A stretch of DNA of 64,000 bases from IMG/VR virus record IMGVR_UViG_3300044640_001495, positions 62,001 through 126,000 of that record; one strand, written 5' to 3'. Of the stretch, positions 10,594 through 28,141 are shown piece by piece. The notes beneath the pieces were generated by a model. The model searched no databases. It saw only the letters and a list, made by a program, of their open reading frames with translations, and had not been told where the DNA came from. The stretch's first letter is position 1; every line of letters starts with the position of its first letter. A program made the translations under genes and the position numbers.

Positions 10594-10623
10594 AGAGGGA
10601 TGATTCCGATTAAATATATTTAT

Positions 10624-11223
10624 ATGATGCCAAAATCCCTATCGCTTAAATCGAATCCCGGAGAGGACTTGTGGAATGAATGCATGGAAACTATAAAATC
10701 TCGGTGCTGTGCAGATCCATTGTATGAAAATTATGTAAATCTAACTCCTGCACAATATTATTATTTTGTGACAGCGATACACGAAAATAAGATTGTATCC
10801 TTTGGTGCCATAGAATATTCTCCTCACAAATGGGGAGAGAAAATTGCAAGAGTATTAACTAGATTTTGGATACATCCAGATTTTAGAAGCAACGGATTAA
10901 CCAAGTGGGGCCCTAGTGCTGTTAGATTTAGTCCAATTATACTTAACGCTCAGCTTGAATTTTTAAATTCACAGAATAAAATAAAAGTTGCTATGATCAC
11001 AAGAGAAGGAAAATACTCGAAAAGTTTTAAAGAAATAACAAAACTTGCATCGTCTGTTTCAGTTGATTCTTTTGAAATATTAGAAAATATATACAATGTC
11101 TGCGGAGACTCGAACGACGATTCGTGTTATCAAATGGTAGCACTGTCGTCAATAAGCCATGAAGACAAATGGAATGTCTTTTCCGAAGCAATATCTGCTG
11201 GATTCTTTAAAGGACCAAATTAA
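10624..11223 (+). CDS. GNAT-like acetyltransferase (putative)
   Basis: ARVLTRFWIHPDFRSNG resembles GNAT motif A. Confidence 0.5.
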   Translation: MMPKSLSLKSNPGEDLWNECMETIKSRCCADPLYENYVNLTPAQYYYFVTAIHENKIVSFGAIEYSPHKWGEKIARVLTRFWIHPDFRSNGLTKWGPSAVRFSPIILNAQLEFLNSQNKIKVAMITREGKYSKSFKEITKLASSVSVDSFEILENIYNVCGDSNDDSCYQMVALSSISHEDKWNVFSEAISAGFFKGPN

Positions 11224-12074: not shown

Positions 12075-13306
12075 TTAACAATTATAGAAGAAATTAAATT
12101 TTGATATTTTTCGTTTAAATCGTTAAGATCACTACCTGATATATAAACATATCCGTTATTGCTAATTGCTAAATCGTTCCTTGGAAGATTAACTTTATTA
12201 TTAGTTGGTAATTTAATATAGTCTGCAAGAAAGTCTTTTTTAATCTCTATGCTTTTAATGAGACCCGGTTTTAATCCTAAATCTCTTTTCATACTACACT
12301 TGCTTTTGTTTAACAACATATTTTTATTTTTAAGAATAGAGTTAACTAACTTTGATGCATAGTGATTTTCTCCAGAGTATTGCAATAGATGGCATCCTAC
12401 GGAAACTCGAGCTGCAAAATCAATGAAATAAATATTTCCCTCTTTTAATATCACATCTAGCATGAACGGACAATTATCTAACTCAGTTAAAGAAATAAAC
12501 TTTTCTAATTTAATTTTGATATTTTCATAAAAATCGCTGTTAAAATATTTAGACGGATACACTAATGCTGTTTCAGCCGCATAGGGATATGAATTAGATT
12601 CTATATCATAAAAAAAATCTAAACTAAGAGATTTATTAAGTATGTGTCCAATCACAGAGATTATTGGTCCATCAATATATTCCTGAATTATGTAATCACT
12701 ATCTGCCGAATAATATTCAAAAGTTTTAAATTTTTCACCATGGCTTTCTTGATAATCGTGTACTTTAACATCGACGTCTTTAAAAAAATCTACAAGACTT
12801 TCTCTAGAAGAAATTATTTTTATCCCCAAACTTGCCATTCCCCCTGACGGTTTTACTAAACATGGAAATTTAATATCTGAAGATACAATGTTTAATGTTT
12901 TTTTATTTTTAACAATTTGATAAATTTTAGGAACATTGATCTTTAGATCTTTCCATATTTTGTAATAAACTATTTTTTCTTTAATTTTTTCGTATGATTT
13001 TAATTTAATTCCCGGTAGATCAAATTTACTGTTTATTTCAGCAATTAATTTCATATGATGATCGGGGAATGTAGGATAGATATATTGATATTTTTTTGTT
13101 TCTAATAATTGAGAAAGTAAATTTAAAAATTGATCGGTAGTATCAACAACAAATATGTTATCAAATTTAGATAGATGTGGCTTCATTAGATCAAATTCGG
13201 GATGATCTTTAGGAACAATTATATCTAAATTATAACCTTGATTTATTAAATCATAGATCGTAGATAAATGATGATATCCGCGACATAACAACAAAATATT
13301 ATTCAT
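12065..13306 (-). CDS. ATP-grasp ligase (L-amino-acid-ligase-like)
   Basis: FPCLVKPSGGMASLGI, YIIQEYIDGP and IYFIDFAAR motifs. Confidence 0.8.
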   Translation of the reverse strand: MNNILLLCRGYHHLSTIYDLINQGYNLDIIVPKDHPEFDLMKPHLSKFDNIFVVDTTDQFLNLLSQLLETKKYQYIYPTFPDHHMKLIAEINSKFDLPGIKLKSYEKIKEKIVYYKIWKDLKINVPKIYQIVKNKKTLNIVSSDIKFPCLVKPSGGMASLGIKIISSRESLVDFFKDVDVKVHDYQESHGEKFKTFEYYSADSDYIIQEYIDGPIISVIGHILNKSLSLDFFYDIESNSYPYAAETALVYPSKYFNSDFYENIKIKLEKFISLTELDNCPFMLDVILKEGNIYFIDFAARVSVGCHLLQYSGENHYASKLVNSILKNKNMLLNKSKCSMKRDLGLKPGLIKSIEIKKDFLADYIKLPTNNKVNLPRNDLAISNNGYVYISGSDLNDLNEKYQNLISSIIVNYT

Positions 13307-14474
13307 TTATTAATCTCACAAAATGCCACTTTGAAAATAAATGTTGATATCTTCCTCTTACTTTTCCAAAATCTCGTTGGCTTCTTTCCACTCCTAAATA
13401 CAATCTTTTATCTAATTGAGATAAAAATAGACTATTCATATCTAAAAAACTATCACGACATTTGGTTAATTCTGGATGCTCAAAAATCCAAAAATGTTTA
13501 TCTTCTCTGTCTGCAATATTTGGTTTATCAGCCTGAAAATTATTTGTCCAGTTATCATATAATACTTGCCTTGCTACAGAGTTTTGCATTCTAATAGATA
13601 ATAATGTAAAATCCAATGGCCAATCTTTACTTACATCTGAATAATAATATTGTCTTAAATGAAAATTATCATCAACATATGATGACAACTGATAGGCTTG
13701 TTCCATAGCTAATATTGGGAATTTTGGAGACCAATAAAAATATTCAGTTCCGTATCTATTTTCTTGTGAAGGAATTCCCATCCCTGTACCAGTGTCGGTA
13801 AAACTCATAAACCATTTATTATCTCTATAAGCTAACAACGGTTTATCTATTCCATAAATAGATCCAACTGTTTTACCCTTATTTAATTTGAGAAATTCCG
13901 ATTTACTATATGTCAGCATAAAAGGTATTTCTATATCATTCCATGTGTTAACATGATGCCATAAATCTTCTGTATAAATTTCAGGACTTAAATTATCTGT
14001 CCAATCTGCAATATTGATTTTAATCTGAGGATGATATTGTGACAGCCAATCAAGAACAGGTTTAATGGCAAAGTCCCATTCACTAAGAGTGTTCCTAGCC
14101 GAAGTGTCTAGTGTATTGGCCTTGTAAACTTGAGATTTTATAGCGGCCATTGGCCATTTCACACAAACTTCGTCTAATTTAATACCGTTGTCTATAAAGG
14201 ACCTAAGAACATTATAGCTGTCAGCGCCTCCCGAAAAATATAAAATTAGATAATCGTAGCTATCTCTAATCTGTTGAGCACGTTGTTGATAAAGTTTTTT
14301 GAGAGAAACTTTCCCCAACAAGGATCTATCAAAATTGTTCCAAATTTGATCAAAATATATGTAACTAACTTCCTGATTGGTGTCGGTAGCAAATACCAAT
14401 GCTTGAAATTTATTTTTAAATTTCGTAGCACCTACCTGCCAAAATCCTTCTACTTCTTGATTAAACATGTTCAT
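13299..14474 (-). CDS. PP-loop ATPase-like protein
   Basis: YDYLILYFSGGADSYNVL PP-loop; start refined. Confidence 0.65.
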   Translation of the reverse strand: MNMFNQEVEGFWQVGATKFKNKFQALVFATDTNQEVSYIYFDQIWNNFDRSLLGKVSLKKLYQQRAQQIRDSYDYLILYFSGGADSYNVLRSFIDNGIKLDEVCVKWPMAAIKSQVYKANTLDTSARNTLSEWDFAIKPVLDWLSQYHPQIKINIADWTDNLSPEIYTEDLWHHVNTWNDIEIPFMLTYSKSEFLKLNKGKTVGSIYGIDKPLLAYRDNKWFMSFTDTGTGMGIPSQENRYGTEYFYWSPKFPILAMEQAYQLSSYVDDNFHLRQYYYSDVSKDWPLDFTLLSIRMQNSVARQVLYDNWTNNFQADKPNIADREDKHFWIFEHPELTKCRDSFLDMNSLFLSQLDKRLYLGVERSQRDFGKVRGRYQHLFSKWHFVRLINE

Positions 14475-14524
14475 ATTTATAGACAAAAAAAATTATGGAA
14501 AATTAATATAATAAATACTTTACC

Positions 14525-15019
14525 ATGATATTACAGCCACTATATAAATTTATCAATTTCCAAACTTTACAGAAAGAAGTTTTGGAATTGGTAAAAAAAA
14601 TTAACGTTAACGACAATCAGCTAATATGTCAAGGATTAGAAAACGGTTCAAATGATTGGATCACAGGCATTGGTCGTATTGAAGAATTAGAAGAACAACA
14701 GGAACGAAATTATAAATTTATATATCCAGAGCTTCGTGGGACACTTCTAGAAAAATTTATTAAAGACCACAATGGTTTTAGAACTAGAATAATGTTAATG
14801 AATTCTAGAAAATGTTATTCTATCCATCGAGATCCAACCCCTAGATTGCATTTACCTATAATCACAAATGATCAGTGTTGGATGATATGGCCATATAAAA
14901 ATGAATGCCATCAGCTACATGAGGGAGTTGTGTATCGAGCAGATACAACACAAGATCACACTTTTATTAATGGATCTTTAGATCAAATTAGAATACACAT
15001 TGTAATGTGCATTGATTAA
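14525..15019 (+). CDS. AspH-like HxD...H dioxygenase (putative)
   Basis: YSIHRDP, RLHLPIITN and DTTQDHTFIN...RIHIV motifs. Confidence 0.7.
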   Translation: MILQPLYKFINFQTLQKEVLELVKKINVNDNQLICQGLENGSNDWITGIGRIEELEEQQERNYKFIYPELRGTLLEKFIKDHNGFRTRIMLMNSRKCYSIHRDPTPRLHLPIITNDQCWMIWPYKNECHQLHEGVVYRADTTQDHTFINGSLDQIRIHIVMCID

Positions 15020-15025
15020 TAATAT

Positions 15026-15601
15026 ATGAAAAATACTACAAATTACACCCAATTTAAATTTCCCTTCGATGACATCTTAAAGCCAGGCGTCATCTTAGAT
15101 GGAAGATTTTCAAGACATGATACCTGGGGTTTGGATTTCTTGCCTATAGATGAACTAGTGAAAGATGATGTATCGAAATTTTTTGAAGAAAAAGATCTTC
15201 CTTTAAAAAATATATATTTTATGTATGGTCCTGCGCAAGAATCTTTAGTTATTCATGTTGACGGATTTGTTGAAGAGAACGGAACCTTTCACGGAATTCA
15301 TTGCGGATTAAATTGGATTTATGGTTCTACAAATCATGTGATGAAATGGTATTCATCAGATACTGTTGGAGAAACATCTGTAAACAAAGAAGGACTCCGT
15401 AGAACAAGATGGTCAGCAAGTGACTGTGTATCTATTGAAGAATTAACCATCGCTGTACCAACTTTAGTGAGAACAGATATACCTCATAATGTAGTTAATT
15501 TTAGCAATGAAAAAAGATTCTGTGTAAGTTTAAGGTTCGCTGATATAACTTTGACATATCAGCAAGTTCGAGAAAAACTGCTAGATTATATTTTAATTTA
15601 A
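15026..15601 (+). CDS. Cupin/dioxygenase-like protein (putative)
   Basis: IHVDG ... RTDIPHNVVN ... RFCVSLRF. Confidence 0.55.
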   Translation: MKNTTNYTQFKFPFDDILKPGVILDGRFSRHDTWGLDFLPIDELVKDDVSKFFEEKDLPLKNIYFMYGPAQESLVIHVDGFVEENGTFHGIHCGLNWIYGSTNHVMKWYSSDTVGETSVNKEGLRRTRWSASDCVSIEELTIAVPTLVRTDIPHNVVNFSNEKRFCVSLRFADITLTYQQVREKLLDYILI

Positions 15602-15997
15602 TTACGGCAGTACTCTAGTTAGCTCTAGCTTTGTTTCATCCACAACAACAACAGGTTCGTTGTCTAATTTGATAAGTGTAGCAAACGCAGGTTCGTTTGA
15701 TATTCCGGTGAGTTTATGTCCGCATTTAATTAGATAGTTGTCTCTAGAAGAAAAATAGGTGGATATCTCAGAATTAATTACGGAGGTAAATTCTCTGCAT
15801 TTTGCAACAGATTCGTAATTATATACAGACACTAGTGTTAATCCGTCTTCAGTCCTAGAAATTTCACGACTGATTACTAATCCCGAATTTTGTCTAATAG
15901 TATCAATGATCTCCTGAAAGGCAGCTCCTTCGGGAGTATCCATGTAGAACGGATATTCTTGTGTTAGTCTTTCATAAGTCCAGGTTACTGTTAGCAT
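15602..15997 (-). CDS. Hypothetical protein
   Basis: 131-aa ORF with GAGG SD, preceded by ATAAATA on the minus strand. Confidence 0.7.
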   Translation of the reverse strand: MLTVTWTYERLTQEYPFYMDTPEGAAFQEIIDTIRQNSGLVISREISRTEDGLTLVSVYNYESVAKCREFTSVINSEISTYFSSRDNYLIKCGHKLTGISNEPAFATLIKLDNEPVVVVDETKLELTRVLP

Positions 15998-16039
15998 ATT
16001 AGTTCCTCGTTTAAATACACTATTATTTATCTAAGAGAT

Positions 16040-16963
16040 ATGACAACACTTTATACACCCATCCATTTTAAAAAAAATAACGAAATAGATCCGGAAAACA
16101 GCGAATTTAAAATAGTCTATGTAGACATCGTTCATCGTTGCAATATGGAATGCAGCAATTGCTATCTGCCAAACAGAAGCTACAAAGACATAGAATTTAA
16201 CAAGCTCATTGAAACTATAAGCAAATTTAAAAAAAGAACGGAATTTAGATTAATTGGTGGGGAGCCTACATTACACAAAGATTTACCTAAGATCATAAAA
16301 CTTATAACAAGTATGCCTATCAAGCATCGAATAGTTTTAGTCACAAACGGATTGCGTTTAGCAAATGAAACTTACGTAAAAAAATTAGTGGATGCTGGAT
16401 TAAAAACAGTGTATCTTAGCATGAACGGCGCCGACGATGACACGGTTTATGCTACCATGGATAATTTACGATGTGCAAAGAAAAAAGTTAGAGCATTTCA
16501 AAATTGCGTGGATAATAAGATAAAACTGGCCATTGGTTGTATTCTAGCTAAGGGAATAAACGAACATGTTCCAGATCGTCTGAAAGAGTTGATACAAAAA
16601 AATAATTATCCAGTGGCGTTGGAGTTTAGAAATGTAGGGCAAATTGGTAGATATTCCTTAGAAAAAAATCAAAATTATTCTAGAAAAGAAATTTTAGATA
16701 TTTTAGAAAAAGTTTTTAATTTTGATTCTAATACAGAAGATTGGAAAAATAGTTTAATAGATGATGATTCTTATAGCTGGCATTTTCCTTTAGAAAAAGC
16801 CAAGGCAAAACTGTGTAAGACTACTTCTCTACGTATTACTGATTGGAGTTTAATGGATGAGGGATATCCTGCACAGGACAATCTTAAAAGAGGTAGGATT
16901 ACGGAAAATTTTAAACTGGCTCCTTTTTTCGAGCACCTACGTGAAAACGAAAACGGATATTAA
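16040..16963 (+). CDS. Radical SAM protein (MoaA/NifB/PqqE-like core)
   Basis: CNMECSNC (CxxxCxxC), GGEPTLH and VTNG motifs. Confidence 0.9.
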   Translation: MTTLYTPIHFKKNNEIDPENSEFKIVYVDIVHRCNMECSNCYLPNRSYKDIEFNKLIETISKFKKRTEFRLIGGEPTLHKDLPKIIKLITSMPIKHRIVLVTNGLRLANETYVKKLVDAGLKTVYLSMNGADDDTVYATMDNLRCAKKKVRAFQNCVDNKIKLAIGCILAKGINEHVPDRLKELIQKNNYPVALEFRNVGQIGRYSLEKNQNYSRKEILDILEKVFNFDSNTEDWKNSLIDDDSYSWHFPLEKAKAKLCKTTSLRITDWSLMDEGYPAQDNLKRGRITENFKLAPFFEHLRENENGY

Positions 16964-16964
16964 A

Positions 16965-17795
16965 TTATTTTATTGTGACACGATACAGGGATCGTCGGTG
17001 CCCGTCATATCCACCAGTAGCTCTGTGTAAGGTACAACGATTATCCCAGAGCACTAGTTGATTATTAGCCCACCGATGTGTATAGATAAATTTTGGATTT
17101 TTCTGGTGATTAAAAATTTCTGCTAGTATTTTGTAAGATTTATCTTTGTCTAAACCTTCAATTCCAATAGTATAACCTCGATTGCAGTTGATTACTTTCT
17201 TTCCTGTTTCAGGATGCTCCAACACCAACGGATGATGTTGGATCTCATACGCTTCATCTGAATATCTAAGTTTCATTGACCTACCAACATCTGACACCCC
17301 GTATCTAGCATCGGGCGCATACCCGCGTCTAGCAGAATTTATTCCTCGATGATTTTCTAAAATCTGTTTAAGGTCATCGTGAAGTGTGTCGTATGCTTTA
17401 TACAGATCGGAAAATAGTGTATCGCCACCACTCGGTGGAATTTCTTTAGCATATAATGCAGTTCCTTTTGGTGGCTCTTTCATGTGGAACCAATCAGAAT
17501 GCCAACCTTCGGCAAATATTTCAGTAGATTCGTTAGGCTCTCTCAGCACTTCTGCTACATAGTCTGATCCGTTAATTGGATCAATAAACGGATCTCGACA
17601 ATGCTCACCAAAATATAATACAAATTTTTCCAAGTCATTCACTGTAAGATGCTGATCAACAAAAATCAATACTTGGTACTTATTCCATAATTCTTTTATT
17701 TCCGTTATGTAGTGTGAATCTATTTTGGAAGAAAAATCTACGCCACTAATATAGGCGCCGTATTGAGTGTCTGTTGGAGTAATTGAAATTTTCAT
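16965..17795 (-). CDS. TauD/TfdA-family 2OG dioxygenase
   Basis: WHSD, GGDTLFSD and WDNRCTLHRA...R motifs. Confidence 0.92.
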   Translation of the reverse strand: MKISITPTDTQYGAYISGVDFSSKIDSHYITEIKELWNKYQVLIFVDQHLTVNDLEKFVLYFGEHCRDPFIDPINGSDYVAEVLREPNESTEIFAEGWHSDWFHMKEPPKGTALYAKEIPPSGGDTLFSDLYKAYDTLHDDLKQILENHRGINSARRGYAPDARYGVSDVGRSMKLRYSDEAYEIQHHPLVLEHPETGKKVINCNRGYTIGIEGLDKDKSYKILAEIFNHQKNPKFIYTHRWANNQLVLWDNRCTLHRATGGYDGHRRSLYRVTIK

Positions 17796-18553
17796 AATTT
17801 AAAAAATTTGTTTATAATTATACCAAAAAAGTCATAGTCGTGAGATTCTACTTTGGTAGTAGAGCTTGCCGCATATGCGTGGTGATTATTATGGAGGTGA
17901 CCTCCTTTTAAAAGAAAAACCATTGCTCTTGAATTTTTGTTTCTGCTACTTTCCCCTGTGATAAAATCTTGTGTTCCTATTCCGTCATGGCAATAAATGT
18001 TTACCAATCCGTTTAAATACAATCCCAATATTGCTGAAAAACTAAAAATATAAACATAAGAAACGAGCCCAAAAAGAAATATAAAGATTATAGAAAATCC
18101 TATATATAATTCATAATACCATTTGGCAAGAAATCTAAATCTAAAATCTTTTAGGTAGTCCCGTACCATCGACGGATTTACTGAAATAGGATTTAACCAG
18201 TATAGAACTTTTAATTTTCCTTTAAGTGGAGTATGCGGATCTTTTTCTGTATCAGTAAATGCATGATGCATTCGATGTATACCTACATAGGATAACAACG
18301 GCCCTTGCATATTAAAGAAATGTAAAAAAATCAATAAATTCTCTTTAAATTTTGTAGTCTTAAAACTTTTATGTGTGAAATATCTATGGGCACCTATCTC
18401 GTCGCCTATACCTTTAAATAATTCTTTAGCAATTAAGCCAGCAATTATTCCTAAAAAACTAAAATGATAAAACAACACCCAAAGTAAAAGTCCATGTTGA
18501 ATCAATATTAACGAATGATGATAGCGATGAAAGGTGTAAGTTCCTATCTGCAT
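17792..18553 (-). CDS. Membrane fatty-acid (delta-9-type) desaturase
   Basis: HRYFTH, HRMHH, DPHTP and HNNHH motifs. Confidence 0.9.
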   Translation of the reverse strand: MQIGTYTFHRYHHSLILIQHGLLLWVLFYHFSFLGIIAGLIAKELFKGIGDEIGAHRYFTHKSFKTTKFKENLLIFLHFFNMQGPLLSYVGIHRMHHAFTDTEKDPHTPLKGKLKVLYWLNPISVNPSMVRDYLKDFRFRFLAKWYYELYIGFSIIFIFLFGLVSYVYIFSFSAILGLYLNGLVNIYCHDGIGTQDFITGESSRNKNSRAMVFLLKGGHLHNNHHAYAASSTTKVESHDYDFFGIIINKFFKL

Positions 18554-19365
18554 TAGTCTGTTCCTGTTCTAAGCGATCCAGGTTTAGCTATCAGCTCAAT
18601 AATTCGTCTAGCAAAATCAAAATCTCCAGGATGTGTTTCGTAGCTGTAATGTCCGGGACGTGCATGATGATTATTGTGCAGTCCGCTGCCCAGTGTAATC
18701 CAATTAAAGATACCCCTTAAATTTCTGCTGTTATCCCCTGTTTCATGTTCTCTAGTTCCATAGTTTGGCGTATGTCCAAAAGTTGCAATTATTGCTTCAC
18801 TGTGTGTTTGTAGAACTCCAGCACCCATAAAAAAGAAAACGGCCAATTCCCATTTTATAACAAATAACAATACAAATGTGATCCAGAAAATTTTATAGTA
18901 ATGATCGCTCATAAATTTCATTACAGGATCCCTAAGCATTTTTCTACAAAACATTGGGTTAAGTTTAGGAGGATTGTTCTGCCATGTCAAATACGCATGC
19001 CAAAAACCTTTAGTAGGAGTATGAGGATCTAGATCAGTATCACTATATCTATGATGATAGGGAGTATGTATGTTTGCCATCCAAACTGGACTGCCTCTAC
19101 CTGCTAGCAGTCCTAGATATACTCCAACAATTTCTAAAATTTTATGCGTCTGGAAGGCAGAATGTGAAATATACCTATGATAGAAAATATTAAATCCAAT
19201 GAATCCAATAAAGAACCATCCTACATACGCAGCTAACAGCCACCATGCCGATGTCATATCTAACAGTACCATCGCGATACCACTGATAAATATCACATGC
19301 TGCGGTATCGTTATTGTTCTTAGATTTTTATTGATTGAAATTTTTTGTAGTAGATTTGTTAACAT
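18553..19365 (-). CDS. Membrane fatty-acid (delta-9-type) desaturase
   Basis: HRYISH, HTPYHH, DPHTP and HNNHH motifs. Confidence 0.9.
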   Translation of the reverse strand: MLTNLLQKISINKNLRTITIPQHVIFISGIAMVLLDMTSAWWLLAAYVGWFFIGFIGFNIFYHRYISHSAFQTHKILEIVGVYLGLLAGRGSPVWMANIHTPYHHRYSDTDLDPHTPTKGFWHAYLTWQNNPPKLNPMFCRKMLRDPVMKFMSDHYYKIFWITFVLLFVIKWELAVFFFMGAGVLQTHSEAIIATFGHTPNYGTREHETGDNSRNLRGIFNWITLGSGLHNNHHARPGHYSYETHPGDFDFARRIIELIAKPGSLRTGTD

Positions 19366-19382
19366 ACCCTTATTTAATTAAA

Positions 19383-20195
19383 ATGATTCACACCACTCAA
19401 ATTCCTTCTCAACACTGGCCAAAAAAGTTTGATCAATTTCGAGATTTGATTTATATTCCTCTAGATCTCCCAGAACCTCCTAAGGTCGATATCGATCTAT
19501 TTACAGATTGGGCCTTCACAAAAGCCCCCAAACTTGTAGGAAATATTAATCATCCCGAGACCGGTCAAAAAATTATGCATTTCGAGGAACGGGGTATGAA
19601 AGGCTGGGGATTTTATCCCTGGATCCAAGTTAGTGCATTTCATCACGGATACAGCAATTCTTGGATTTCAGAGTTTGATAAGATATTTCCAGATGTAGTT
19701 GAATACATTCATCTTTTCCCCTACAATATATTGTCCGGAGTAACTATCCTTTTACAAAAATCAAACGTGGCAGCTCCATTGCACACCGATGCCGATGATT
19801 GGCTAGGGATGAGATTTTATCTTCACAACGAAGTTAAAGAGGATGCGTTATATTTTTGTCCTAGAAAAACCAACGAAAACAATCGCATATCCACTTACAT
19901 TATAGAATCAGAAAATGTGTACCCACAAGAATGGGAGAAATACGTAGATTTAAATAAAAAAATTTACAGCAGTCATCCTTGCCAGAGACACGCCTGGGCG
20001 TTGACTAGTACGAGAGCAGCACACGGTATCGAAGCATTTGAATACGATCGATGTGCTAGGGTGACATTTTTAGTTCATTCGCATCGACCTTCTGTGAATC
20101 ACAACGCCTGGAACCCTGATAAATTGTATGACTTACTTACAAGATCTGTAAACAAATATTCAGATTATGCAATATGGTGGGAATCTTCAAAATAA
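19383..20195 (+). CDS. Hypothetical protein, possible HxD...H dioxygenase
   Basis: PLHTDAD ... RAAHG ... RVT; start refined to MIHTTQ. Confidence 0.5.
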   Translation: MIHTTQIPSQHWPKKFDQFRDLIYIPLDLPEPPKVDIDLFTDWAFTKAPKLVGNINHPETGQKIMHFEERGMKGWGFYPWIQVSAFHHGYSNSWISEFDKIFPDVVEYIHLFPYNILSGVTILLQKSNVAAPLHTDADDWLGMRFYLHNEVKEDALYFCPRKTNENNRISTYIIESENVYPQEWEKYVDLNKKIYSSHPCQRHAWALTSTRAAHGIEAFEYDRCARVTFLVHSHRPSVNHNAWNPDKLYDLLTRSVNKYSDYAIWWESSK

Positions 20196-20198
20196 AAA

Positions 20199-21635
20199 AT
20201 GCAAGTACTCATACTCACTACTAACACTGATCCTCGTAGACAGGTACGATATCTTGGACCATACCAGATAGCTTGGTGGTTGAGATCTAATGGCTATTCA
20301 ACGCAGGTACTTGATTACATTTACTTTATGACAAAGGAACAGAGATTATCTCTATTAAAAAAATTCATTACGACAGAAACAAAAATAGTAGGATATGCTC
20401 CTTTTGCTTTGCTTAAAACAAATCAAAGATTTGTACATGGTGAACAACTAATTCATGATATCCTAGATGAAGTCAAAGAAAATTTTCCCTGGGTTAAAAT
20501 TGTCATCGGGGGAGTCTGGGCAATAAATTGGATCAACTACGGTCGGAAAAAAATTAATTGGAAGGTAGATGCTGTGTTTAAAGATGAAGCGGAACACAGC
20601 TTTCTCGAATACTGCCATTATATTTTTAAAGGATCTTCTCATCCTAAGTTTACCATAGAAAACGATGTTAAGATAATACATCCTACACAAAAATATGATA
20701 TTCAAAATTGTTCAATGCGTTATGAAAAAAATGATTTTATCCTACCAGAAGAATCTCTTCCTTTAGAATTAAGTAGAGGTTGTATATTTAAATGCAAGTT
20801 TTGTCAATATCCTAACATAGGAAAAGACAAAGATGATTTTAATAAATCTATGGAGAGTATTAAACAATCTTTAATTCATAACTATGAAAACTTTGGAACC
20901 ACTAGATATCATCTATCAGATGATACACTGAATAGCCATAGAGAAAGAACAAGAGCATTCTGTGAGATGGTAAAGCAATTACCTTTCACAATAGAATATA
21001 TAGGATATGCTAGACTAGACCTGTTGTACATATGGCCGGAACAACAAGAACTATTACCCGAAAGTGGTTTGGTAAGTTGCCATTTTGGTATCGAATCATT
21101 CGACCCCGAATCTTGTAAAATCATAGGAAAAGGTTGGGGCGCCAAAAATAATAAATCTTCACTTAGAGACATCAGAACAAAATGGGGTGATGATGTGATA
21201 ATAAACTGCTCTATGATAGTGGGCCTTGGAAAAGAAACAGAACAAGACTGGCAAGATTCTCAAGAATGGTTTATACAGAATAAAATTCACGACTGGTTTT
21301 ATAATGTGCTATCGATACATAAAGGCGTTGCATCAAGTGAATTTGAAAGAGAATATGAAAAATATGGTTATAGATTTATTAATGATAGTGATTGGGAATG
21401 GGTTTCTAGCCATATGACTAGAGACAGAGCCACCGAATGGGTTAACAATAATATAAAAAAAATAGCTGGTATAGCAGTTCCTAGTGTTTGGAATTATTCG
21501 GCGCATAGAAATATAGGATTTTCCAAACAAGAGATTCTCGACAGCAATTATCTAGATCTTTTCGAAATCCGAGTAAAAAATCAGATGACAGAAAAACTTA
21601 TAGAAAAATATTATAAGCTGGCAATGGAGTATTAA
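20199..21635 (+). CDS. Cobalamin-binding-type radical SAM enzyme (class B methyltransferase-like)
   Basis: N-terminal Rossmann-like domain (LGPYQIAWWLR, IVIGG), SRGCIFKCKFC, DDT, and FGIES motifs. Confidence 0.85.
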   Translation: MQVLILTTNTDPRRQVRYLGPYQIAWWLRSNGYSTQVLDYIYFMTKEQRLSLLKKFITTETKIVGYAPFALLKTNQRFVHGEQLIHDILDEVKENFPWVKIVIGGVWAINWINYGRKKINWKVDAVFKDEAEHSFLEYCHYIFKGSSHPKFTIENDVKIIHPTQKYDIQNCSMRYEKNDFILPEESLPLELSRGCIFKCKFCQYPNIGKDKDDFNKSMESIKQSLIHNYENFGTTRYHLSDDTLNSHRERTRAFCEMVKQLPFTIEYIGYARLDLLYIWPEQQELLPESGLVSCHFGIESFDPESCKIIGKGWGAKNNKSSLRDIRTKWGDDVIINCSMIVGLGKETEQDWQDSQEWFIQNKIHDWFYNVLSIHKGVASSEFEREYEKYGYRFINDSDWEWVSSHMTRDRATEWVNNNIKKIAGIAVPSVWNYSAHRNIGFSKQEILDSNYLDLFEIRVKNQMTEKLIEKYYKLAMEY

Positions 21636-21636
21636 C

Positions 21637-22218
21637 ATGGAAAAATGTTTTAGAAAACTTAATCTTGGAATTCCCGAAGATCATAAAATTTTTAAAGAAT
21701 ATCGTAGTTTCAATTATAGTCAGGTAGAAGTTAAATTATATGATTCGTCAAAAACTTTTAAACAATATAATCTACCTAAAGACTATTTTTTAGGAACCGA
21801 AGTACACAAAGTAATGTGTGATCTAAATTTACGTGCATCTATATTTTTAATAGAAGCCAACCATTTTTACAATTGGCATAGAGACGCATGGCGGAATATA
21901 ACTCTTAACTTGACGCTAGGTGAGGATGAAAATTATCTTGTTTTATTCGCTCCTGATGCAAATCCTAAAGAATCTACTGGGTCTATGATGTACGAAAGAT
22001 TTATCGAACTCAAATACGATCACAACAAATTTGTGTTATTGAACACACAAATTCCACATTTCACTGTCACTACAGGAATCAAAGATAGGTATCTATTAAC
22101 AATTGCACATTATTCTGGAAAACCAACAGAGTCTCTAAAAAATCGACCATGCGACGATTACACAGAATTTGAAAATACACTTCAATATTTCGCTGAACGG
22201 AATCTAGTCAAAGATTGA
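21637..22218 (+). CDS. HxD...H dioxygenase-like protein (putative)
   Basis: YNWHRDA ... LLNTQIPHFT ... RYLLT. Confidence 0.55.
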   Translation: MEKCFRKLNLGIPEDHKIFKEYRSFNYSQVEVKLYDSSKTFKQYNLPKDYFLGTEVHKVMCDLNLRASIFLIEANHFYNWHRDAWRNITLNLTLGEDENYLVLFAPDANPKESTGSMMYERFIELKYDHNKFVLLNTQIPHFTVTTGIKDRYLLTIAHYSGKPTESLKNRPCDDYTEFENTLQYFAERNLVKD

Positions 22219-22860
22219 TTATAAAGAAATTAAAAAATCATTATTTCTATATTGATTTTTCAAATAACCAATTCGATAAAGAAGATCTACATTCCAGGTT
22301 CTATTTCTCATCATTTGCCTATATCTTGGATGTGACGGCATTGTACCAGCAGGAATAATTGCCTCGTCAAAAAATTCATACCTATCTTTTATTATTGGTA
22401 TCTGTTGTCTCATTCTATTCCAGCGGTTGGTAGTTTTAGGATTAGCCACAATAAAATCATAGGAATAATATCCTATACTTTCTGCATGTGAAATGAGCAA
22501 TGTGCTGGTGTCAGCAATGCCATTATCCACAGCATTGAAAATAGAATTATTAGGACTACAAAGTATTATACATTGCCGCCAAGATTTGATCATATTCCAG
22601 AACTGACCAATAGCAATACATTTAATATTTTCTTCTTTGTCAAATACTAGAGCAATCTTATTTTTAGTTTGAGTTTCATTAGAAATCATTGTTTCGATAG
22701 ATTTGATAAAAACAGAGATATCAAAATCTTTATCATCAAAAGGATACGACCAAATTTTGGAAGTGTTCTGTTTATAATTTTTGGTGTCAACTAATAATTT
22801 TTCTAGATATACTAGATCATCTATAGTTCCAAACCTAGAGGAATATTCAGGATTTATCAT
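22219..22860 (-). CDS. Hypothetical protein (possible GNAT-like fold)
   Basis: 213-aa ORF; only weak pattern resemblance. Confidence 0.5.
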   Translation of the reverse strand: MINPEYSSRFGTIDDLVYLEKLLVDTKNYKQNTSKIWSYPFDDKDFDISVFIKSIETMISNETQTKNKIALVFDKEENIKCIAIGQFWNMIKSWRQCIILCSPNNSIFNAVDNGIADTSTLLISHAESIGYYSYDFIVANPKTTNRWNRMRQQIPIIKDRYEFFDEAIIPAGTMPSHPRYRQMMRNRTWNVDLLYRIGYLKNQYRNNDFLISL

Positions 22861-23782
22861 AGAAGTTGTGCGGCAACATTTCTGATTTTAGATATTTTGA
22901 AAAACAAAGTCTATTTTCTTTTATTCCACGATTGTATTCTTCGAATGACTCAGTAGAAGTTGCGAAAAAAACACACTTTGACATTTCTACTTTTAAAATT
23001 TCACAAAACTTTTCTTGTACTGCACGATATTTTTGATAATTGTAATCGGCAGTATATCGTTGTAATAGTTTTAATCCAACCGCAGCCGACAGTCTATTGA
23101 CGTATTTGTTTTTATTATAAACATATAAAGCATCATCATTGTCTTCTTTGGTTAGTCTCATGCCGATTCTAAGGTGTTGTACCGGAAAATTTTTACTAAG
23201 GCTGAATGTGATATCAGTAATACATTCATAAGAAAAATCAAAATTGATTCCGCCACAAACTCCAAAGTAGCAACAGTCGATTAACACTGGAACTTTTAGT
23301 GCTTCACAAGTTTCTAAAACCGAATCAGTCATTACATGTTCATTTCCGGTGCCAGCGAACGGAAGACTAAAAATCACCACGTCATTTTCTTGTATTGGTT
23401 CATCTTCAATACAGACACTCTGATCAAAATATAGCTTGGCAGCTATTGAATGATACATGTATTCGCCTCGAAAATACCTTAACCTACGATTACGATTTTT
23501 TAGATAAAATTTATCAAAAGCTTCTGTGGTTCCGTTTGAAAAAGCGAGGCCTTGGAATTTTTCCAAACCTATAACTTGATTAGAGGTGGTTTTCATTATC
23601 CATGCTTTATACTCTTTTGTAAATTTATCGTGTATTTCATCATCATTCATACAATCATTTTGCAGAACATCAACAATGATATCAGATACTTCTTGTTCTA
23701 AATCTTGATCTTTAATGCAATGTACACTGCCAAAAGGTAATTTTTTTAATTCTAGTAATTTATTCCAAGTATTGTTTTTCAT
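22847..23782 (-). CDS. PLP-dependent aminotransferase-like enzyme (fold type I)
   Basis: IDCCY and FSLSK..LRIG motifs; start refined to MKNNTW. Confidence 0.7.
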   Translation of the reverse strand: MKNNTWNKLLELKKLPFGSVHCIKDQDLEQEVSDIIVDVLQNDCMNDDEIHDKFTKEYKAWIMKTTSNQVIGLEKFQGLAFSNGTTEAFDKFYLKNRNRRLRYFRGEYMYHSIAAKLYFDQSVCIEDEPIQENDVVIFSLPFAGTGNEHVMTDSVLETCEALKVPVLIDCCYFGVCGGINFDFSYECITDITFSLSKNFPVQHLRIGMRLTKEDNDDALYVYNKNKYVNRLSAAVGLKLLQRYTADYNYQKYRAVQEKFCEILKVEMSKCVFFATSTESFEEYNRGIKENRLCFSKYLKSEMLPHNFYDKS

Positions 23783-23838
23783 GAAATATTTATCATAGCA
23801 CTTTATTGCATAAATATTTTCACTTACGGAGATGAGTA

Positions 23839-24741
23839 GTGATACAAAAATTTTTATTAGGACTGAGCATGATGTTTTTTTTATCTGCTCCCAGCCAAGC
23901 ATTCGACGCTGGTTCCCAACTCATTAAAGTGGTGATGCCATTTGCTCCAGGAGGCGGTGTTGATCAAACTTTTAGGCATTTTGAAAATTGGGCAGCGAAA
24001 AAAAACATTAAGTTTGTAGCAGTTTACAGACCAGGAGCCGAAGGATTGATTGGCATGAATGAAATTGCCGCAATGCCCAAAGACGGATATCATATTTCTT
24101 TTGCAACAGCCGGCACCATAGCCGTCCAAAGATTGAAAAATCCTCAAGCAGAATTAGAAACAGTGACGTTGATAAAAAATAGTATTATGGCGTTTGTCAC
24201 TCATAAAGATAGTGGCATACGGTCTCTAACTGATTTGTATCAAGGTAATCCAAAAACTCTAGCCTACGGCGCACCCGGACAACTAATGACTATACAGCAG
24301 TTAATAGAACTTTCAGATGGAAAAATGAAAAGTGCCACTCTTGTGCCCTACAAAGGTGGAGCTCCAGTAGTACAAGATATTGCAGGCAATCATGTGCAGT
24401 TTGCAGCAGTACCATTGTTGATCACAAAGAGTTTTGTTGATTCGGGAACCATCCGATTACTGGCTGTAGACAGCACAACTAGATTAGCAGAATATCCCAA
24501 CATTCCCACGTTTAAAGAAATCTTCCCTAAGTGGAAAAGTACTGACGGATTTGCCGTGGTATTGCCCAAGGGAACTGATACAAAAGCTGTAGAATTTTGG
24601 AATTCTATATTGAAAGAATATGTCACAGATCAAAAAGTACAAGCTGACTTTTTGAAAGACTACAATATGTCGCAAAAATTTGGTAAAGAAGAATTGGAAA
24701 AAACTGTTTCTAATGCAATTAACGCATTAGAAAAAAAATAA
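23839..24741 (+). CDS. Tripartite tricarboxylate transporter substrate-binding protein (Bug/TctC family)
   Basis: Signal peptide, VVMPFAPGGGVD, PGAEGLIG..., VPYKGGAPVVQDIAGNHV and IPTFKE motifs. Confidence 0.85.
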   Translation: MIQKFLLGLSMMFFLSAPSQAFDAGSQLIKVVMPFAPGGGVDQTFRHFENWAAKKNIKFVAVYRPGAEGLIGMNEIAAMPKDGYHISFATAGTIAVQRLKNPQAELETVTLIKNSIMAFVTHKDSGIRSLTDLYQGNPKTLAYGAPGQLMTIQQLIELSDGKMKSATLVPYKGGAPVVQDIAGNHVQFAAVPLLITKSFVDSGTIRLLAVDSTTRLAEYPNIPTFKEIFPKWKSTDGFAVVLPKGTDTKAVEFWNSILKEYVTDQKVQADFLKDYNMSQKFGKEELEKTVSNAINALEKK

Positions 24742-24771
24742 TATGCACCTTGCTGTCATAAGAAAAATGTC

Positions 24772-25536
24772 ATGAATATCAACCAATACATCGATAGGGT
24801 AAAATTTAAAACCCTACCACAAGATTTTAATCATCAAGATGGTAAGAACTATGAAAGCTCTTACGAATACACCAAGACCTTTAGCAACTATCATTTTGAT
24901 AAATTTAAACAGGAGCATGAGGGTGAATGGTATCATCGGCTGGGAAGATTCAAAGGAGATTGGGCAGACGATGTTGCTAAAATTATAGATAAATCAAAAT
25001 CATTATCCTGGGATCAAAGTACGGCGGCAGGTCAACGTCCGGGATTCCCTGGGGGTGTTAGTCCAATGAGAACACAAGAGCAAAACGACAGAAAGGCTCA
25101 CGGTTTAGACCATGTTGATCATACTAACTTAGTTTTAGAAGAATATCTAGATCAGTTTCCTAAAATTAAAAAAATGGTAGACCATTGGCATTTAGAAAAA
25201 GTTAGTTATCGTTGCCATGTGCAATGGCCTGGTCAGACGTTCGCCATGCACATTGATAAATTATGGCATCGCAATCCCACAGACCCGTCAAAAATAGTTA
25301 GGATTATTGTACATCTAGAAGATTACGAACCCGGCCAGATCCTTATATACGGTAATGCAGTACACACTCAGTGGAGAGCTGGCGATGTTCATATGTTCGA
25401 TACCTTGAATGTTCCGCATGGAACTTTTAATATTTCAAATAAACCAAGACCAAATATCACTATCACAGGATTGAGATCAGCCCTTACTGATCAAAGATTG
25501 CAAGAAGCTACTGCTGAATCAGAATATTGTATATAA
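24772..25536 (+). CDS. AspH-like HxD...H dioxygenase (putative)
   Basis: PGQTFAMHIDK ... WRAGDV...NVPHGTFN...R. Confidence 0.65.
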   Translation: MNINQYIDRVKFKTLPQDFNHQDGKNYESSYEYTKTFSNYHFDKFKQEHEGEWYHRLGRFKGDWADDVAKIIDKSKSLSWDQSTAAGQRPGFPGGVSPMRTQEQNDRKAHGLDHVDHTNLVLEEYLDQFPKIKKMVDHWHLEKVSYRCHVQWPGQTFAMHIDKLWHRNPTDPSKIVRIIVHLEDYEPGQILIYGNAVHTQWRAGDVHMFDTLNVPHGTFNISNKPRPNITITGLRSALTDQRLQEATAESEYCI

Positions 25537-25574
25537 TGCATCCGTAAAAAACATCGCATATGGTAAAATAAAAA

Positions 25575-26315
25575 ATGAATAAAAACTTTGTTATTGTTGG
25601 GACTCCTCGTAGCGGCACTACGTTTGTCTGCGATGTGCTGAACGAATTTGATGATATTTGGATTCCAGAGTTTCCTAATTACGAACCGTTTAATCCGCAT
25701 AACTTACACAGATTAGCTAACTCGATGAAAAATAATTCATTCGATCAAGATTTAATCATTAAAAAATTTATTAGTGTAAAATCAAAGAAAAATGTAGATT
25801 ATTTTGGTTTTAAAACTTTCTTGTCCTTTCACTCAGATTTAAAAAATTTAATTAAAGATAATAATCTAGATGTGATCTTAATTTTAAGAAAAGATATTTG
25901 GAAAGTCATAGGAAGTATGCTGATCGCAATAGACCATAATGACTACATAGGTAGCTCTAAAAAACATGATCCGTTTATTTTTGTTGAATCCAAAAGAGAA
26001 GTAAGAAGAATAATGACATTTTTCAATCAACTTTGTAGAACATATTGGGAACTAGAGAATTTATTTGCTAAAGATTCTAATATTATCGAAAAACTATATT
26101 TTGAAGATATTGTAAATAATAACATTGCAAACAATTTAGACACTTATTTTAACAAAAAAATTATTTTTGATCATAATTATAACGACACCGACGATATCAA
26201 TTCTTATATTGGAAATTTTGAAGAACTGCAAAGTTTAATTATAAAAGAAGTTAAAAAAAATCACACACATTATTCAGCCCTTCCTTCATATATTGTTAAT
26301 CAATTAGTGTTATGA
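25575..26315 (+). CDS. Sulfotransferase (Stf0-like)
   Basis: IVGTPRSGTT 5'-PAPS-binding loop; ILILRKD 3'-PB-like motif. Confidence 0.8.
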   Translation: MNKNFVIVGTPRSGTTFVCDVLNEFDDIWIPEFPNYEPFNPHNLHRLANSMKNNSFDQDLIIKKFISVKSKKNVDYFGFKTFLSFHSDLKNLIKDNNLDVILILRKDIWKVIGSMLIAIDHNDYIGSSKKHDPFIFVESKREVRRIMTFFNQLCRTYWELENLFAKDSNIIEKLYFEDIVNNNIANNLDTYFNKKIIFDHNYNDTDDINSYIGNFEELQSLIIKEVKKNHTHYSALPSYIVNQLVL

Positions 26316-26686
26316 TACTACAAAAAGTTATATTCGAAGAAAAAAATAGAAATGGCACAAGTGTGGATGATTTTTATTATCGAGGATTAGAAGAAAAACT
26401 CCAAGGAAAAAAAGGCACAGGAGTTAGAGCGTTAGCAGCTGATTTTATCAGACAGGGCAGAATCCTAGATAGATTTTTAATCTTAGATGAAACAGGATGT
26501 AAATTAGAAATTTATACTTTTTTTAAAGATGAAGAATCATTTTCTGAATTTATTAATCATCCTGTAAATCAAAATGCAAAAAAGTTTTGGCAAGATCGAG
26601 ATTGGCAAAGAACTGCCACAAAAACTGTAATTGCTGATTTTTTGAACGTGAGAAACAGACTCGGACAACTTAAATCTATAATCTAA
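26312..26686 (+). CDS. Hypothetical protein
   Basis: 124-aa ORF translationally coupled to the sulfotransferase. Confidence 0.65.
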   Translation: MILQKVIFEEKNRNGTSVDDFYYRGLEEKLQGKKGTGVRALAADFIRQGRILDRFLILDETGCKLEIYTFFKDEESFSEFINHPVNQNAKKFWQDRDWQRTATKTVIADFLNVRNRLGQLKSII

Positions 26687-27125
26687 TTGATCGATTTGTT
26701 TTAAAGACCCAATCCCAAAAAGGTGTTCCGATACCATAATTGCATCTACTTTCTGTATGATGCAAATAATGCCATTGACCAGATGTGTACCAAGGATACA
26801 AATTGAATTTTCTATTGTGTTCTAGCCTTTCTTGTATAATGGCTGCATAAACATAAAATAAAATAATTATCCACCATTGACCGGTGATCCAGCTGAAAAT
26901 AAAAGTAGGTAGAACTTCAGTTATCCAATAATCAAACGTGCTAGGCCAATTGTCATTGAACAGAAAAATGTTATTCCAATGCCAAACTATCTTGTGTTTT
27001 TTAATATAAGCGTGATGATGAAAATGTAGTTTTGACAGAAATGAAATTTTATGACTGGCTCGGTGTATCCAGTATATCATAAAAGTCCATAGAAAGAAAT
27101 AAAATATTATTTCAATACCGATCAT
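26676..27125 (-). CDS. Fatty-acid hydroxylase / sterol desaturase family protein
   Basis: His boxes HRASH, HFHHH and HYLHH; NYG...WDWVFKT C-terminus. Confidence 0.85.
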   Translation of the reverse strand: MIGIEIIFYFFLWTFMIYWIHRASHKISFLSKLHFHHHAYIKKHKIVWHWNNIFLFNDNWPSTFDYWITEVLPTFIFSWITGQWWIIILFYVYAAIIQERLEHNRKFNLYPWYTSGQWHYLHHTESRCNYGIGTPFWDWVFKTNRSIRL

Positions 27126-27916
27126 ACTAGACCTAGATTTTTCCGAATTTTAGTAGCACTGATGTCAGTAATAGATTCATCAAACGTTTCCTCACCACTG
27201 GTATATCCTACACCACGACCCCAGCCAATATGAACAATATTTGGGACAACTTGAATTTCGTATTGCCCTTGATAAAGCATATCTAAATCACGTTTGATAA
27301 ATCCTTTAACTTTGTCAACTTCGAAAGGATTACTACCTTGCCATCCTTGTACATCACGTACTTGGATGATGACCTGTCCAGTCTTGGCCAGTAATCTTTC
27401 AAAGAGTGCTCGATGACCTGCATGCCATGGTTGCCATCTGCCTAACATCTGAACAGTTTCTTTTTTCCAGTCAAACACAGGACGACGACGATTGTCTATA
27501 ATGTGTGCGGCAATAAACTCCCCCCATTTTTCTCCATCTTGTTCTGTAATCCTAAAGTCGTAAATCTCTGGCGGAATAAAGGCTTTGTTAGTATCTTCAA
27601 ACCGACCTTTGTCAATTGTATCTACCCAGATAGTCCAATCTGCTTTAAAGTTGTTACGCATCTCAACTAGAGGAGCAACAAAGTCACAGATGACGTAATC
27701 AACATCAGTCATTGCATCTGCTAATTCGCGCATACGATGACTTTGACGAATACGACCTTCGTTGCTAAAATCCCAGTCGTTATACTTTTTACGCACATCG
27801 TCAGCATTTAACCAACCTACACGTTTTTTATCTGCTTGTAAATGGTCAACAATATGTTGTGCCAAATATGTTTTACCTGAACCAGGTAGGCCCATAACTA
27901 AAATACGTTTGTTCAT
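27122..27916 (-). CDS. cysC: Adenylylsulfate kinase fused to an HxGH nucleotidyltransferase domain
   Basis: GLPGSGKT P-loop, NADDVR and FSNEGR APS-kinase-like motifs; C-terminal GRWQPWHAGH and ISATKIR. Confidence 0.75.
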   Translation of the reverse strand: MNKRILVMGLPGSGKTYLAQHIVDHLQADKKRVGWLNADDVRKKYNDWDFSNEGRIRQSHRMRELADAMTDVDYVICDFVAPLVEMRNNFKADWTIWVDTIDKGRFEDTNKAFIPPEIYDFRITEQDGEKWGEFIAAHIIDNRRRPVFDWKKETVQMLGRWQPWHAGHRALFERLLAKTGQVIIQVRDVQGWQGSNPFEVDKVKGFIKRDLDMLYQGQYEIQVVPNIVHIGWGRGVGYTSGEETFDESITDISATKIRKNLGLV

Positions 27917-27995
27917 GTAATTTCCTTTAGAATTAACCTATCTTCTCAACTACCAAAAAATGGAGTTATACAAAATTTATTTATTTGGAAAATCA

Positions 27996-28024
27996 TTGAC
28001 CTTTGTTCATTATGATTATATAAT
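27996..28024 (+). promoter_or_regulatory. Near-consensus sigma70 promoter of the tRNA-like gene
   Basis: TTGACC-17 nt-TATAAT ending 7 nt before the first base of the tRNA-like gene. Confidence 0.75.
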
Positions 28025-28030: not shown

Positions 28031-28141
28031 GTGGTCGTGAGTGGAATTGGCAGACCTCCCGCTCGACTCATAGTCGAGAATGGGGACGGGGCAAAGTCGT
28101 AGACAGCGCCTTTGTAGGTTCGAAACCTACCGACCATACCA
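28031..28141 (+). tRNA. Oversized (111 nt) tRNA-like RNA with Leu/Ser-type body, CAU loop and extended anticodon and variable arms
   Basis: Acceptor GUGGUCG/CGACCAU+ACCA, D loop GGAAUUGGCAGAC, T arm GUAGG-UUCGAAA-CCUAC, hairpin CUCGA-CUCAUAG-UCGAG on a further CCCG/UGGG stem. Confidence 0.8.

Follow-up and report, generated by a model that had tools for sequence, protein, structure and literature searches.

A phage-encoded fusion of a trimmed APS kinase and a very small nucleotidyltransferase is a candidate minimal PAPS synthase with counterparts in SAR11

A lake phage carries a 264-residue fusion of a trimmed APS kinase and a very small HxGH nucleotidyltransferase (NT) that, judged by its gene neighbours in phages and in SAR11 bacteria, most likely activates sulfate. 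We propose that the protein is a minimal bifunctional PAPS synthase whose sulfurylase module is a new enzyme family. This proposal rests on comparative genomics, no biochemical evidence exists for any member, and our confidence in it is moderate only. The gene lies at 27122-27916 (-) of the window, by which we mean the whole stretch of 64,000 nucleotides analysed here (positions 62,001 to 126,000 of the IMG/VR record IMGVR_UViG_3300044640_001495). A sequence-only reading had suggested a miniature one-gene PAPS synthase next to a sulfotransferase, with an NMNAT- or cytidylyltransferase-like domain as the alternative. The PAPS synthase reading remains the best-supported explanation after testing, but two corrections are needed. 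The NT domain is not Sat-type; its nearest relatives are NadM/archaeal NMNATs. The sulfotransferase-like ORF beside it is not a conserved partner.

Translation table 11 was used throughout. The fusion matches phrog_10255 'kinase' over its full length (E 2.6e-46), and its AF2 model has a pLDDT of 94.2. It is not a chance ORF, as more than 8000 clusters at 90% identity match it, and 2019 representatives at 50% identity match at E<=1e-3. The N-terminal, APS-kinase-like domain (aa 1-145; 27482-27916 (-)) matches PF01583 APS_kinase at E 2.4e-11 (44.3 bits against a cut-off of 21.1), albeit only over profile positions 5-94 of 152, and scores 34.1 bits against the TIGR00455 cut-off of 138.7. The best PDB sequence hit is the APS kinase 2yvu (E 2.8e-7). 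In line with this, the Foldseek list is led by APS kinases and mostly made of them (7yq1, 1xjq, 2yvu, 4rfv; E about 5e-6, TM by target 0.65-0.76), with T4 polynucleotide kinase and gluconate kinase further down. In the P-loop GLPGSGKT and the LDGDxxR-type motif, residues G9, G14, K15, T16, D39 and R42 are invariant or nearly invariant across 49 homologues and align with canonical CysC, although the first Asp of the motif is Asn here. The probable acceptor-side residues F50 and R55 are likewise conserved and align with the Phe of (G/D)FS and the Arg of DR in CysC. In contrast, a 19-residue deletion removes most of the mobile lid (KGLYKKAR...FTGI), of which only an F/Y-x-[DN]-T remnant remains, and the domain measures about 140 aa instead of the 175-200 aa of canonical CysC.

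The C-terminal domain (aa 146-264; 27125-27481 (-)) comprises only 119 aa, with three strands called by DSSP plus a short fourth and three main helices (AF2 domain model pLDDT 94.6). It contains GRWQPWHAGH at aa 159-168 and ISATKIR at aa 252-258. G159, R160, Q162, H165, H168, G233, R234, G237 and R258 are invariant, and R187, Y238 and S253 nearly so. Matches to curated models are weak: PF01467 is hit only weakly, and NCBIfam NMNAT models are hit at E 5e-5, far below their cut-offs (NF002243, 22.9 against 127 bits; TIGR01527, 22.4 against 181.2 bits). The closest relatives by sequence and fold are NadM/archaeal NMNATs (1f9a, 1ej2, 2qjo, 2qjt), with profile hits at E 1.6e-12 (MJ NMNAT 1f9a) to 1e-7, Z 9.2-10.2, and shared GRFQPFHxGH and ISxTxIR motifs. 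However, the match covers only the first ~75 residues, and about 30 residues of MJ NMNAT (roughly 76-106), a segment that probably contacts the nicotinamide moiety, have no counterpart.

There is no detectable membership of the Sat family. PF01747 matches neither the protein nor anything else in the 353-kb virus record, which CheckV rates 98% complete, and no ATP sulfurylase appears among PDB sequence hits up to E = 10. The domain is about a third the size of a Sat and lacks the PUA-like N-terminal domain and the catalytic domain of about 200 aa. The two appear to share the HxGH Rossmann-like superfamily: T. thermophilus ATP sulfurylase (1v47) aligns over 114 of 119 residues with Z 8.7 and an rmsd of 3.3, while other Sats give Z 5.5-6.5, and PPAT and NMNAT score higher at Z 10.2. 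A GR(D/G) loop follows the fourth strand, which may correspond to the Sat GRD loop. The animal PAPS synthases PAPSS1/2 (PDB 1x6v, 1xjq) have the same kinase-then-sulfurylase order and a homologous kinase domain, PAPSS1 being among the top Foldseek hits, but they are about 620 aa long, and their sulfurylase is a Sat-type domain with a PUA-like N-terminal part.

Four independent lines of evidence tie the small NT to APS metabolism. One is its association with APS kinases. The two halves occur fused, as adjacent overlapping genes in kinase>NT order (at seven loci and in many SAR11 genomes), and in NT>kinase order (at two loci). The NT is also fused to a full-length canonical CysC in the protein P0261 (PF01583 5.7e-63), seen on 4 short contigs, three of them fetched from different samples. 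A search for relatives of P0261 in IMG/VR returned 80 hits that were ordinary kinase-NT genes or NT-only genes, not the fusion. Interestingly, another kinase fusion, P0182, carries a C-terminal domain that aligns over 184 aa with the window sulfotransferase-like protein.

The family is also strongly linked to sulfotransferases in phage contigs. Of 174 phage loci centred on it, 47 carry a Sulfotransfer_3/_1 gene (PF13469 5e-18 and PF00685 8e-11 for positions 6540-7361 of one such locus, L043), always on the same strand and within 6 kb, and 13 of these abut or overlap the gene. None of 80 ThyX-centred control loci carries one (Fisher p = 3e-9); a TauD-centred control set gave only 4 loci and was not used. 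In the phage studied here, the single sulfotransferase-like gene of the record, a Stf0-like ORF of 246 aa at 25575-26315 (+), lies 807 bp from the fusion, but the two genes are on opposite strands and converge, so they are not one operon. The sulfotransferase assignment is weaker than the sequence-only reading implied. The ORF has a 5'-PSB loop (GTPRSGTT) and a conserved R105-K106, yet its Pfam scores fall just under the cut-offs (PF00685, 21.1 against 22; PF13469, 21.8 against 27). A profile comparison with bona fide phage sulfotransferases aligns only the first 32 residues, and the profile of this small family of 45 clusters gave only weak TPST hits in the PDB (E 0.17), whereas all nearest ESM-Atlas clusters are sulfotransferase families (score 0.97). 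The ORF is absent from the 80 closest related loci; the link to sulfotransferases is general, not specific to this one.

A third line of evidence comes from SAR11, where the family is near-core. In 10 near-complete or complete genomes, Sat is found in 0/10 and there is no CysD-like full match, whereas aprA is present in 10/10 and sulfotransferases in 8/10. The mini-kinase is the only APS-kinase homologue in 6/10. In a 121-genome family sample, NT and aprA co-occur 86/7/5/23 (Fisher p = 4e-14, not corrected for phylogeny). In line with this, SAR11 sulfate pathways have been called 'incomplete', while aprAB is core under strong purifying selection (PMC12636525), and what happens to the APS that SAR11 makes has no assigned enzyme.

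Finally, in several SAR11 genomes and one SAR116 genome the NT gene sits directly upstream of aprM-aprB-aprA, where sat sits in sulfur oxidisers. The SAR11 NT gene that precedes aprMBA is 53% identical to the phage domain. At one locus, L362, the order is NT > AprM-like > AprB (TIGR02060, 188.6 bits) > AprA (TIGR02061, 994.6 bits). The five genomes of this NT-next-to-aprA group that were searched have no APS-kinase match over the cut-off and no Sat. The same order plus a canonical CysC occurs in the SAR116 genome, although this genome also has a canonical Sat on another contig. SAR116 pairs aprABM with sat (PMC8547437). Of 80 bacterial loci, 7 have aprA within 8 kb downstream, including the fused form.

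On this basis, we infer that the NT domain transfers AMP from ATP to sulfate in a reversible reaction, giving APS + PPi. HxGH, R160 and the ISATxxR arginine would hold ATP and PPi, and the family-specific arginines R187 and R234 may take the place of the segment that archaeal NMNATs have at this position. The trimmed kinase, assigned by homology and inferred to be catalytic, would then phosphorylate the 3'-OH of APS to give PAPS, which pulls the unfavourable first step forward. In phages, the PAPS may feed phage-encoded sulfotransferases, here probably the Stf0-like ORF, perhaps acting on a hydroxylated lipid or a glycan, which would make sulfation independent of the host's sulfate-activation capacity. 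In SAR11 and SAR116, the same small NT would work with the APS reductase AprMBA, most likely in the ATP-forming direction (APS + PPi -> ATP + sulfate), and so fill the role of the missing Sat. We consider it slightly more likely than not that the NT domain defines a third, previously unrecognised family of ATP sulfurylase derived from NadM, which lets SAR11 finish sulfite oxidation through AprBA and make PAPS, and which phages of lakes and oceans carry within the smallest known PAPS synthase. The many metagenomic 'cysC' auxiliary genes, listed under assimilatory sulfate reduction and never validated, would then be self-sufficient PAPS suppliers for phage sulfotransferases, whose role is called unclear in the literature. 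Our literature searches found no paper on a small sulfurylase or on phage PAPS synthesis. An NMNAT-like scaffold would have been re-used for an inorganic anion, and a compact PAPS-regenerating enzyme would be useful in biocatalytic sulfation.

Some observations sit less easily with this model. Every characterised close relative uses a phosphate monoester, not sulfate, as the nucleophile. The cultured phages Sano, Bacata and DLP_6 carry the fusion but have no recognisable sulfotransferase, and there it sits beside COG3236/NADAR-like and MazG genes. In most SAR11 genomes the pair is next to neither aprBA nor a sulfotransferase, but lies in a conserved block that, from N-terminal sequence alone, appears to encode enoyl-CoA hydratase, CoA-binding protein and ETF genes. 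Moreover, SAR11 could obtain APS from AprBA alone, so the kinase does not strictly need a sulfurylase. It is possible, though in our view unlikely, that a genuine APS kinase tops up PAPS from host-made APS, while the NT half performs unrelated adenylyl transfer, for example as a cut-down NMNAT that regenerates NAD+ during infection, or is a regulatory nucleotide-binding domain. The NadM-like motifs and the NADAR-type neighbour in Sano-like phages are in line with this. However, the truncated match to NMNAT and the missed curated cut-offs weaken this reading without excluding it, the phage has no NAPRTase or Nampt, and SAR11 already has a NadD-size enzyme. Nor does it explain the NT-only genes directly upstream of aprMBA in genomes with no APS-kinase match over the cut-off, or the NT fusion to canonical CysC.

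An equally doubtful alternative is that the pair makes a different PAPS-like donor, a 3'-phospho-nucleoside-5'-diphospho-X compound, in which the NT joins an NMP to a small phosphorylated or other anionic group, such as phosphoramidate or phosphonate, and the kinase adds the 3'-phosphate. This would parallel the Campylobacter O-methyl-phosphoramidate pathway, where the transferase Cj1416 and the APS-kinase homologue Cj1415 probably act on CTP and phosphoramidate in this manner. Indeed, APS-kinase homologues in SAR11 islands sit beside PPDK-like proteins of 756-775 aa or a cytidylyltransferase-PEP-mutase fusion, which look like phosphoramidate or phosphonate decoration pathways. Neighbouring phage genes include other cytidylyltransferases, epimerases and SGNH enzymes typical of glycan decoration, and all characterised small HxGH transferases use phosphate esters. 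Against this, the partners found most often are Pfam-positive sulfotransferases, the NT and the kinase cluster with APS reductase, which acts on adenylyl-sulfate, the kinase keeps the positions that align with conserved CysC residues, and the NT fuses to a CysC that passes the curated apsK-type Pfam model. We rejected a non-canonical CoA synthase, with the NT as phosphopantetheine adenylyltransferase and the kinase as dephospho-CoA 3'-kinase, as very unlikely. PPAT is the joint best fold match, dephospho-CoA kinase also phosphorylates an adenosine 3'-OH, and the SAR11 block contains the apparent CoA-related ORFs, but all 10 SAR11 genomes keep a canonical CoaE and a 167-aa PPAT-size gene. RibF-size genes are present as well, so no CoA, NAD or FAD gap needs filling. 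The kinase is APS-kinase-like, not CoaE-like, and the links to sulfotransferases and aprMBA would be left unexplained.

The fusion is the only clear APS-kinase match in the virus record. A tRNA-like element at 28031-28141 was not confirmed by ARAGORN or Rfam. One freshwater RNA library holds short contigs, 90-99% alike, over parts of the kinase-NT gene, which do not by themselves show transcription, but none over the sulfotransferase-like ORF. A 124-aa ORF of unknown function at 26312-26686 (+) overlaps the stop of the sulfotransferase-like ORF by 4 bp and has no Pfam, NCBIfam or PHROG match. A fatty-acid-hydroxylase-family membrane protein of 149 aa (26676-27125 (-); PF04116, E 2.7e-13) is, like the 124-aa ORF, found in 0 of the 80 closest loci, but its start overlaps the kinase-NT stop by 4 bp, so it probably shares a transcript with the fusion.

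The virus record, of which the window covers bases 62001-126000, is 353 kb long and 98% complete by CheckV, and its DNA recurs in many lake-water metagenomes. ORF 27122-27916 (-) encodes 264 aa and ORF 25575-26315 (+) encodes 246 aa, with 807 bp between them. Both lie in a low-GC island (window 8000-28000; 0.28-0.36 against about 0.43 elsewhere) that is packed with auxiliary genes. These include three fatty-acid desaturases, a TauD-family dioxygenase (E 3.5e-56), two radical-SAM proteins, an ATP-grasp protein, a QueC-like protein, an Asp/Asn-hydroxylase-like protein, a TctC-type binding protein and a fatty-acid hydroxylase, which may point to lipid modification linked to the sulfation genes. 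The two genes of interest converge. The gene encoding the fused kinase and nucleotidyltransferase (NT) overlaps the start of the downstream fatty-acid-hydroxylase gene by 4 bp, and the sulfotransferase-like gene overlaps a 124-aa ORF of unknown function, also by 4 bp. Evidence for transcription is weak, because the RNA-library evidence consists of contigs from related strains only.

Residues 5-92 of the kinase half match PF01583 at E 2.4e-11, and the best solved relatives by sequence are APS kinases, with 2yvu at E 2.8e-7 followed by the PAPSS1 kinase domain. An AlphaFold model built on 49 homologues has a pLDDT of 94.2, and its Foldseek hits are led by APS kinases and mostly consist of them. 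Alignment with canonical CysC showed that the P-loop, D39 and R42 of the LDGDxxR motif, F50 and R55 are all conserved, while a 19-residue deletion removes the lid. The kinase half is a trimmed member of the APS-kinase family, which passes the Pfam cut-off but not the NCBIfam equivalog cut-off.

The NT half (residues 146-264) is predicted with high confidence (pLDDT 94.6) to fold into a very small HxGH Rossmann-like domain. A profile of 47 such domains hits archaeal and NadM NMNATs at E 1.6e-12 to 1e-7. However, the match covers only the first ~75 residues, and about 30 residues of the NMNATs after that point have no counterpart. Fold searches put PPAT and NMNAT first, at Z 10.2, followed by the T. 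thermophilus ATP sulfurylase at Z 8.7 with the longest alignment (114 of 119 residues). No PF01747 match was found. In addition to the general GRxQPxHxGH and ISATxxR motifs, R187, G233, R234, G237 and Y238 are family-specific invariant or near-invariant residues. By descent, the domain is NadM-like and not Sat-type.

Among 174 IMG/VR loci, the two domains are usually fused, but they also occur as adjacent overlapping genes in kinase>NT and in NT>kinase order, and as kinase-only genes. One rare protein, P0261, fuses the small NT to a full-length canonical CysC (PF01583 5.7e-63) and is seen on four contigs, three of them fetched from different samples. Another, P0182, fuses the trimmed kinase to a domain that aligns over 184 residues with the window's sulfotransferase-like protein and shares its PSB loop. 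The trimmed kinase also occurs fused to a C-terminal SGNH/GDSL-like domain of about 200-290 aa (weak PF00657) in the metagenomic proteins P0141, P0217 and P0222. Interestingly, SGNH genes are also frequent neighbours of the kinase-NT gene in phage contigs.

In phages, we clustered the neighbours of the 80 closest loci. The most frequent neighbour family is a Pfam-positive sulfotransferase (PF13469 5e-18 and PF00685 8e-11). Across the 174 loci (2.39 Mb), 47 carry such a gene, always on the same strand and within 6 kb, and in 13 loci it abuts or overlaps the kinase-NT gene. In contrast, none of 80 ThyX-centred control loci from related phages (1.12 Mb) carries one (Fisher p = 3e-9). In the window's own genome, the single sulfotransferase-like gene is the one 0.8 kb away. 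This ORF belongs to a small family of 45 clusters and is not a conserved neighbour, and the association is therefore with sulfotransferases in general. Two families of small P-loop proteins of about 208 aa (N-termini ...GAPGSKWSS... and ...TGPQGSGNHLW...; for example 7027-7653 and 9370-9999 of the phage locus L030) also often abut the kinase-NT gene in phage contigs. One has a weak PF13469 hit at E 0.006 and the other has none, and they may be divergent sulfotransferases. The cultured phages Sano, Bacata and DLP_6 carry the fusion but have no recognisable sulfotransferase, which remains unexplained. In cultured Casjensviridae phages of Xylella, Xanthomonas and Stenotrophomonas (for example Xylella phage Sano, 15406-16143), the fusion has about 40% identity and is annotated as 'kinase', 'adenylylsulfate kinase' in one record, or 'hypothetical protein'. 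It lies next to a COG3236/NADAR-like gene and MazG, with a 'cysteine dioxygenase' 3 kb upstream.

The family is also bacterial. A scan of one genome per prokaryote species found the pair in dozens of Pelagibacteraceae, including complete genomes of cultured strains, and in SAR86 and SAR116, mostly as two overlapping genes. In ten SAR11 genomes, Sat is absent in 10 of 10 and there is no CysD-type full-length match, while AprA is present in all ten at about 990 bits. Sulfotransferases are present in eight, and the trimmed kinase is the only APS-kinase homologue in six. Canonical CoaE, PPAT-size, NadD-size and RibF-size genes are all present, so the small NT is not needed for CoA, NAD or FAD synthesis.

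In a 121-genome sample of the family, the NT is present in 93 genomes and aprA in 91. Both are present in 86, the NT alone in 7, aprA alone in 5 and neither in 23 (Fisher p = 4e-14), although this test is not corrected for phylogeny. In at least ten of these genomes, the NT lies within 6 kb of aprA on the same contig. In L362, a locus of the SAR11 genome G031, the order is NT-only (126 aa) > QmoC-like membrane anchor (AprM) > AprB > AprA, with the Apr subunits passing curated cut-offs. The five genomes of this group that we searched have no APS-kinase match over the cut-off and no Sat. This cluster is flanked, at L362:3902-4573 and L362:8590-9693, by a CADD-family gene, a putative folate-metabolism protein (TIGR04305, 301.7 bits), and by a 367-aa membrane protein with only a weak MamO-C-terminal-like hit, possibly a TauE/SafE-type anion exporter. 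A SAR116 genome shows NT > AprM > AprB > AprA, then two further genes, then a canonical CysC. Seven of the 80 bacterial loci have aprA within 8 kb downstream, including loci with the fused form. The window's NT domain is 53% identical to the SAR11 NT that precedes aprMBA.

The small NT is thus found beside or fused to three kinds of APS- or PAPS-handling enzyme, namely APS kinase, APS reductase and sulfotransferases, and in genomes that, as far as they were searched, lack every known ATP sulfurylase. The one reaction that connects these partners, and that an HxGH adenylyltransferase can plausibly catalyse, is ATP + sulfate <-> APS + PPi. We therefore read the window protein as a minimal PAPS synthase and the NT as a new sulfurylase family, although there are no biochemical data. 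We found no paper that proposes this enzyme. Published work calls the SAR11 sulfate pathways incomplete and treats aprAB as a sulfite-removal system (PMC12636525), while in SAR116 the same system is paired with sat (PMC8547437). Phage cysC is listed as an unvalidated auxiliary gene, and the role of phage sulfotransferases is called unclear.

The nearest characterised relatives of the NT use phosphate esters as nucleophiles, AprBA alone could supply APS to the kinase in SAR11, and one SAR116 genome carries both the NT and a canonical Sat. In addition, full-length APS-kinase homologues in SAR11 variable islands (L359:5143-7958 and L360:1865-6050 in genomes G001 and G003; L358:2286-5224 in G008) sit beside 756-775-aa PPDK/PEP-utiliser-like proteins, or beside a cytidylyltransferase-PEP-mutase fusion plus a TPP decarboxylase, with sulfotransferase-like genes nearby. 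These look like phosphoramidate- or phosphonate-type surface decoration rather than sulfate assimilation. A PAPS-like donor other than PAPS is therefore a real rival.

Elsewhere in the window, positions 33-4330 hold a cluster of eight tRNA genes (Ala, Thr x2, Met, Pro, Gly x2, Arg). A tRNA-like element at 28031-28141 (+), just upstream of the kinase-NT gene, has a 7-bp acceptor-like stem, a T-arm-like GTAGGTTCGAAACCTAC, an encoded ACCA 3' end and a long extra arm. Default ARAGORN does not call this element and Rfam gives no hit; only a lowered threshold with introns allowed gives 'tRNA-Pro(cgg) with an 18-nt intron'. Interestingly, a 109-nt contig in a DNA run spans exactly this element, and the main contig of that run ends inside it at 28062.
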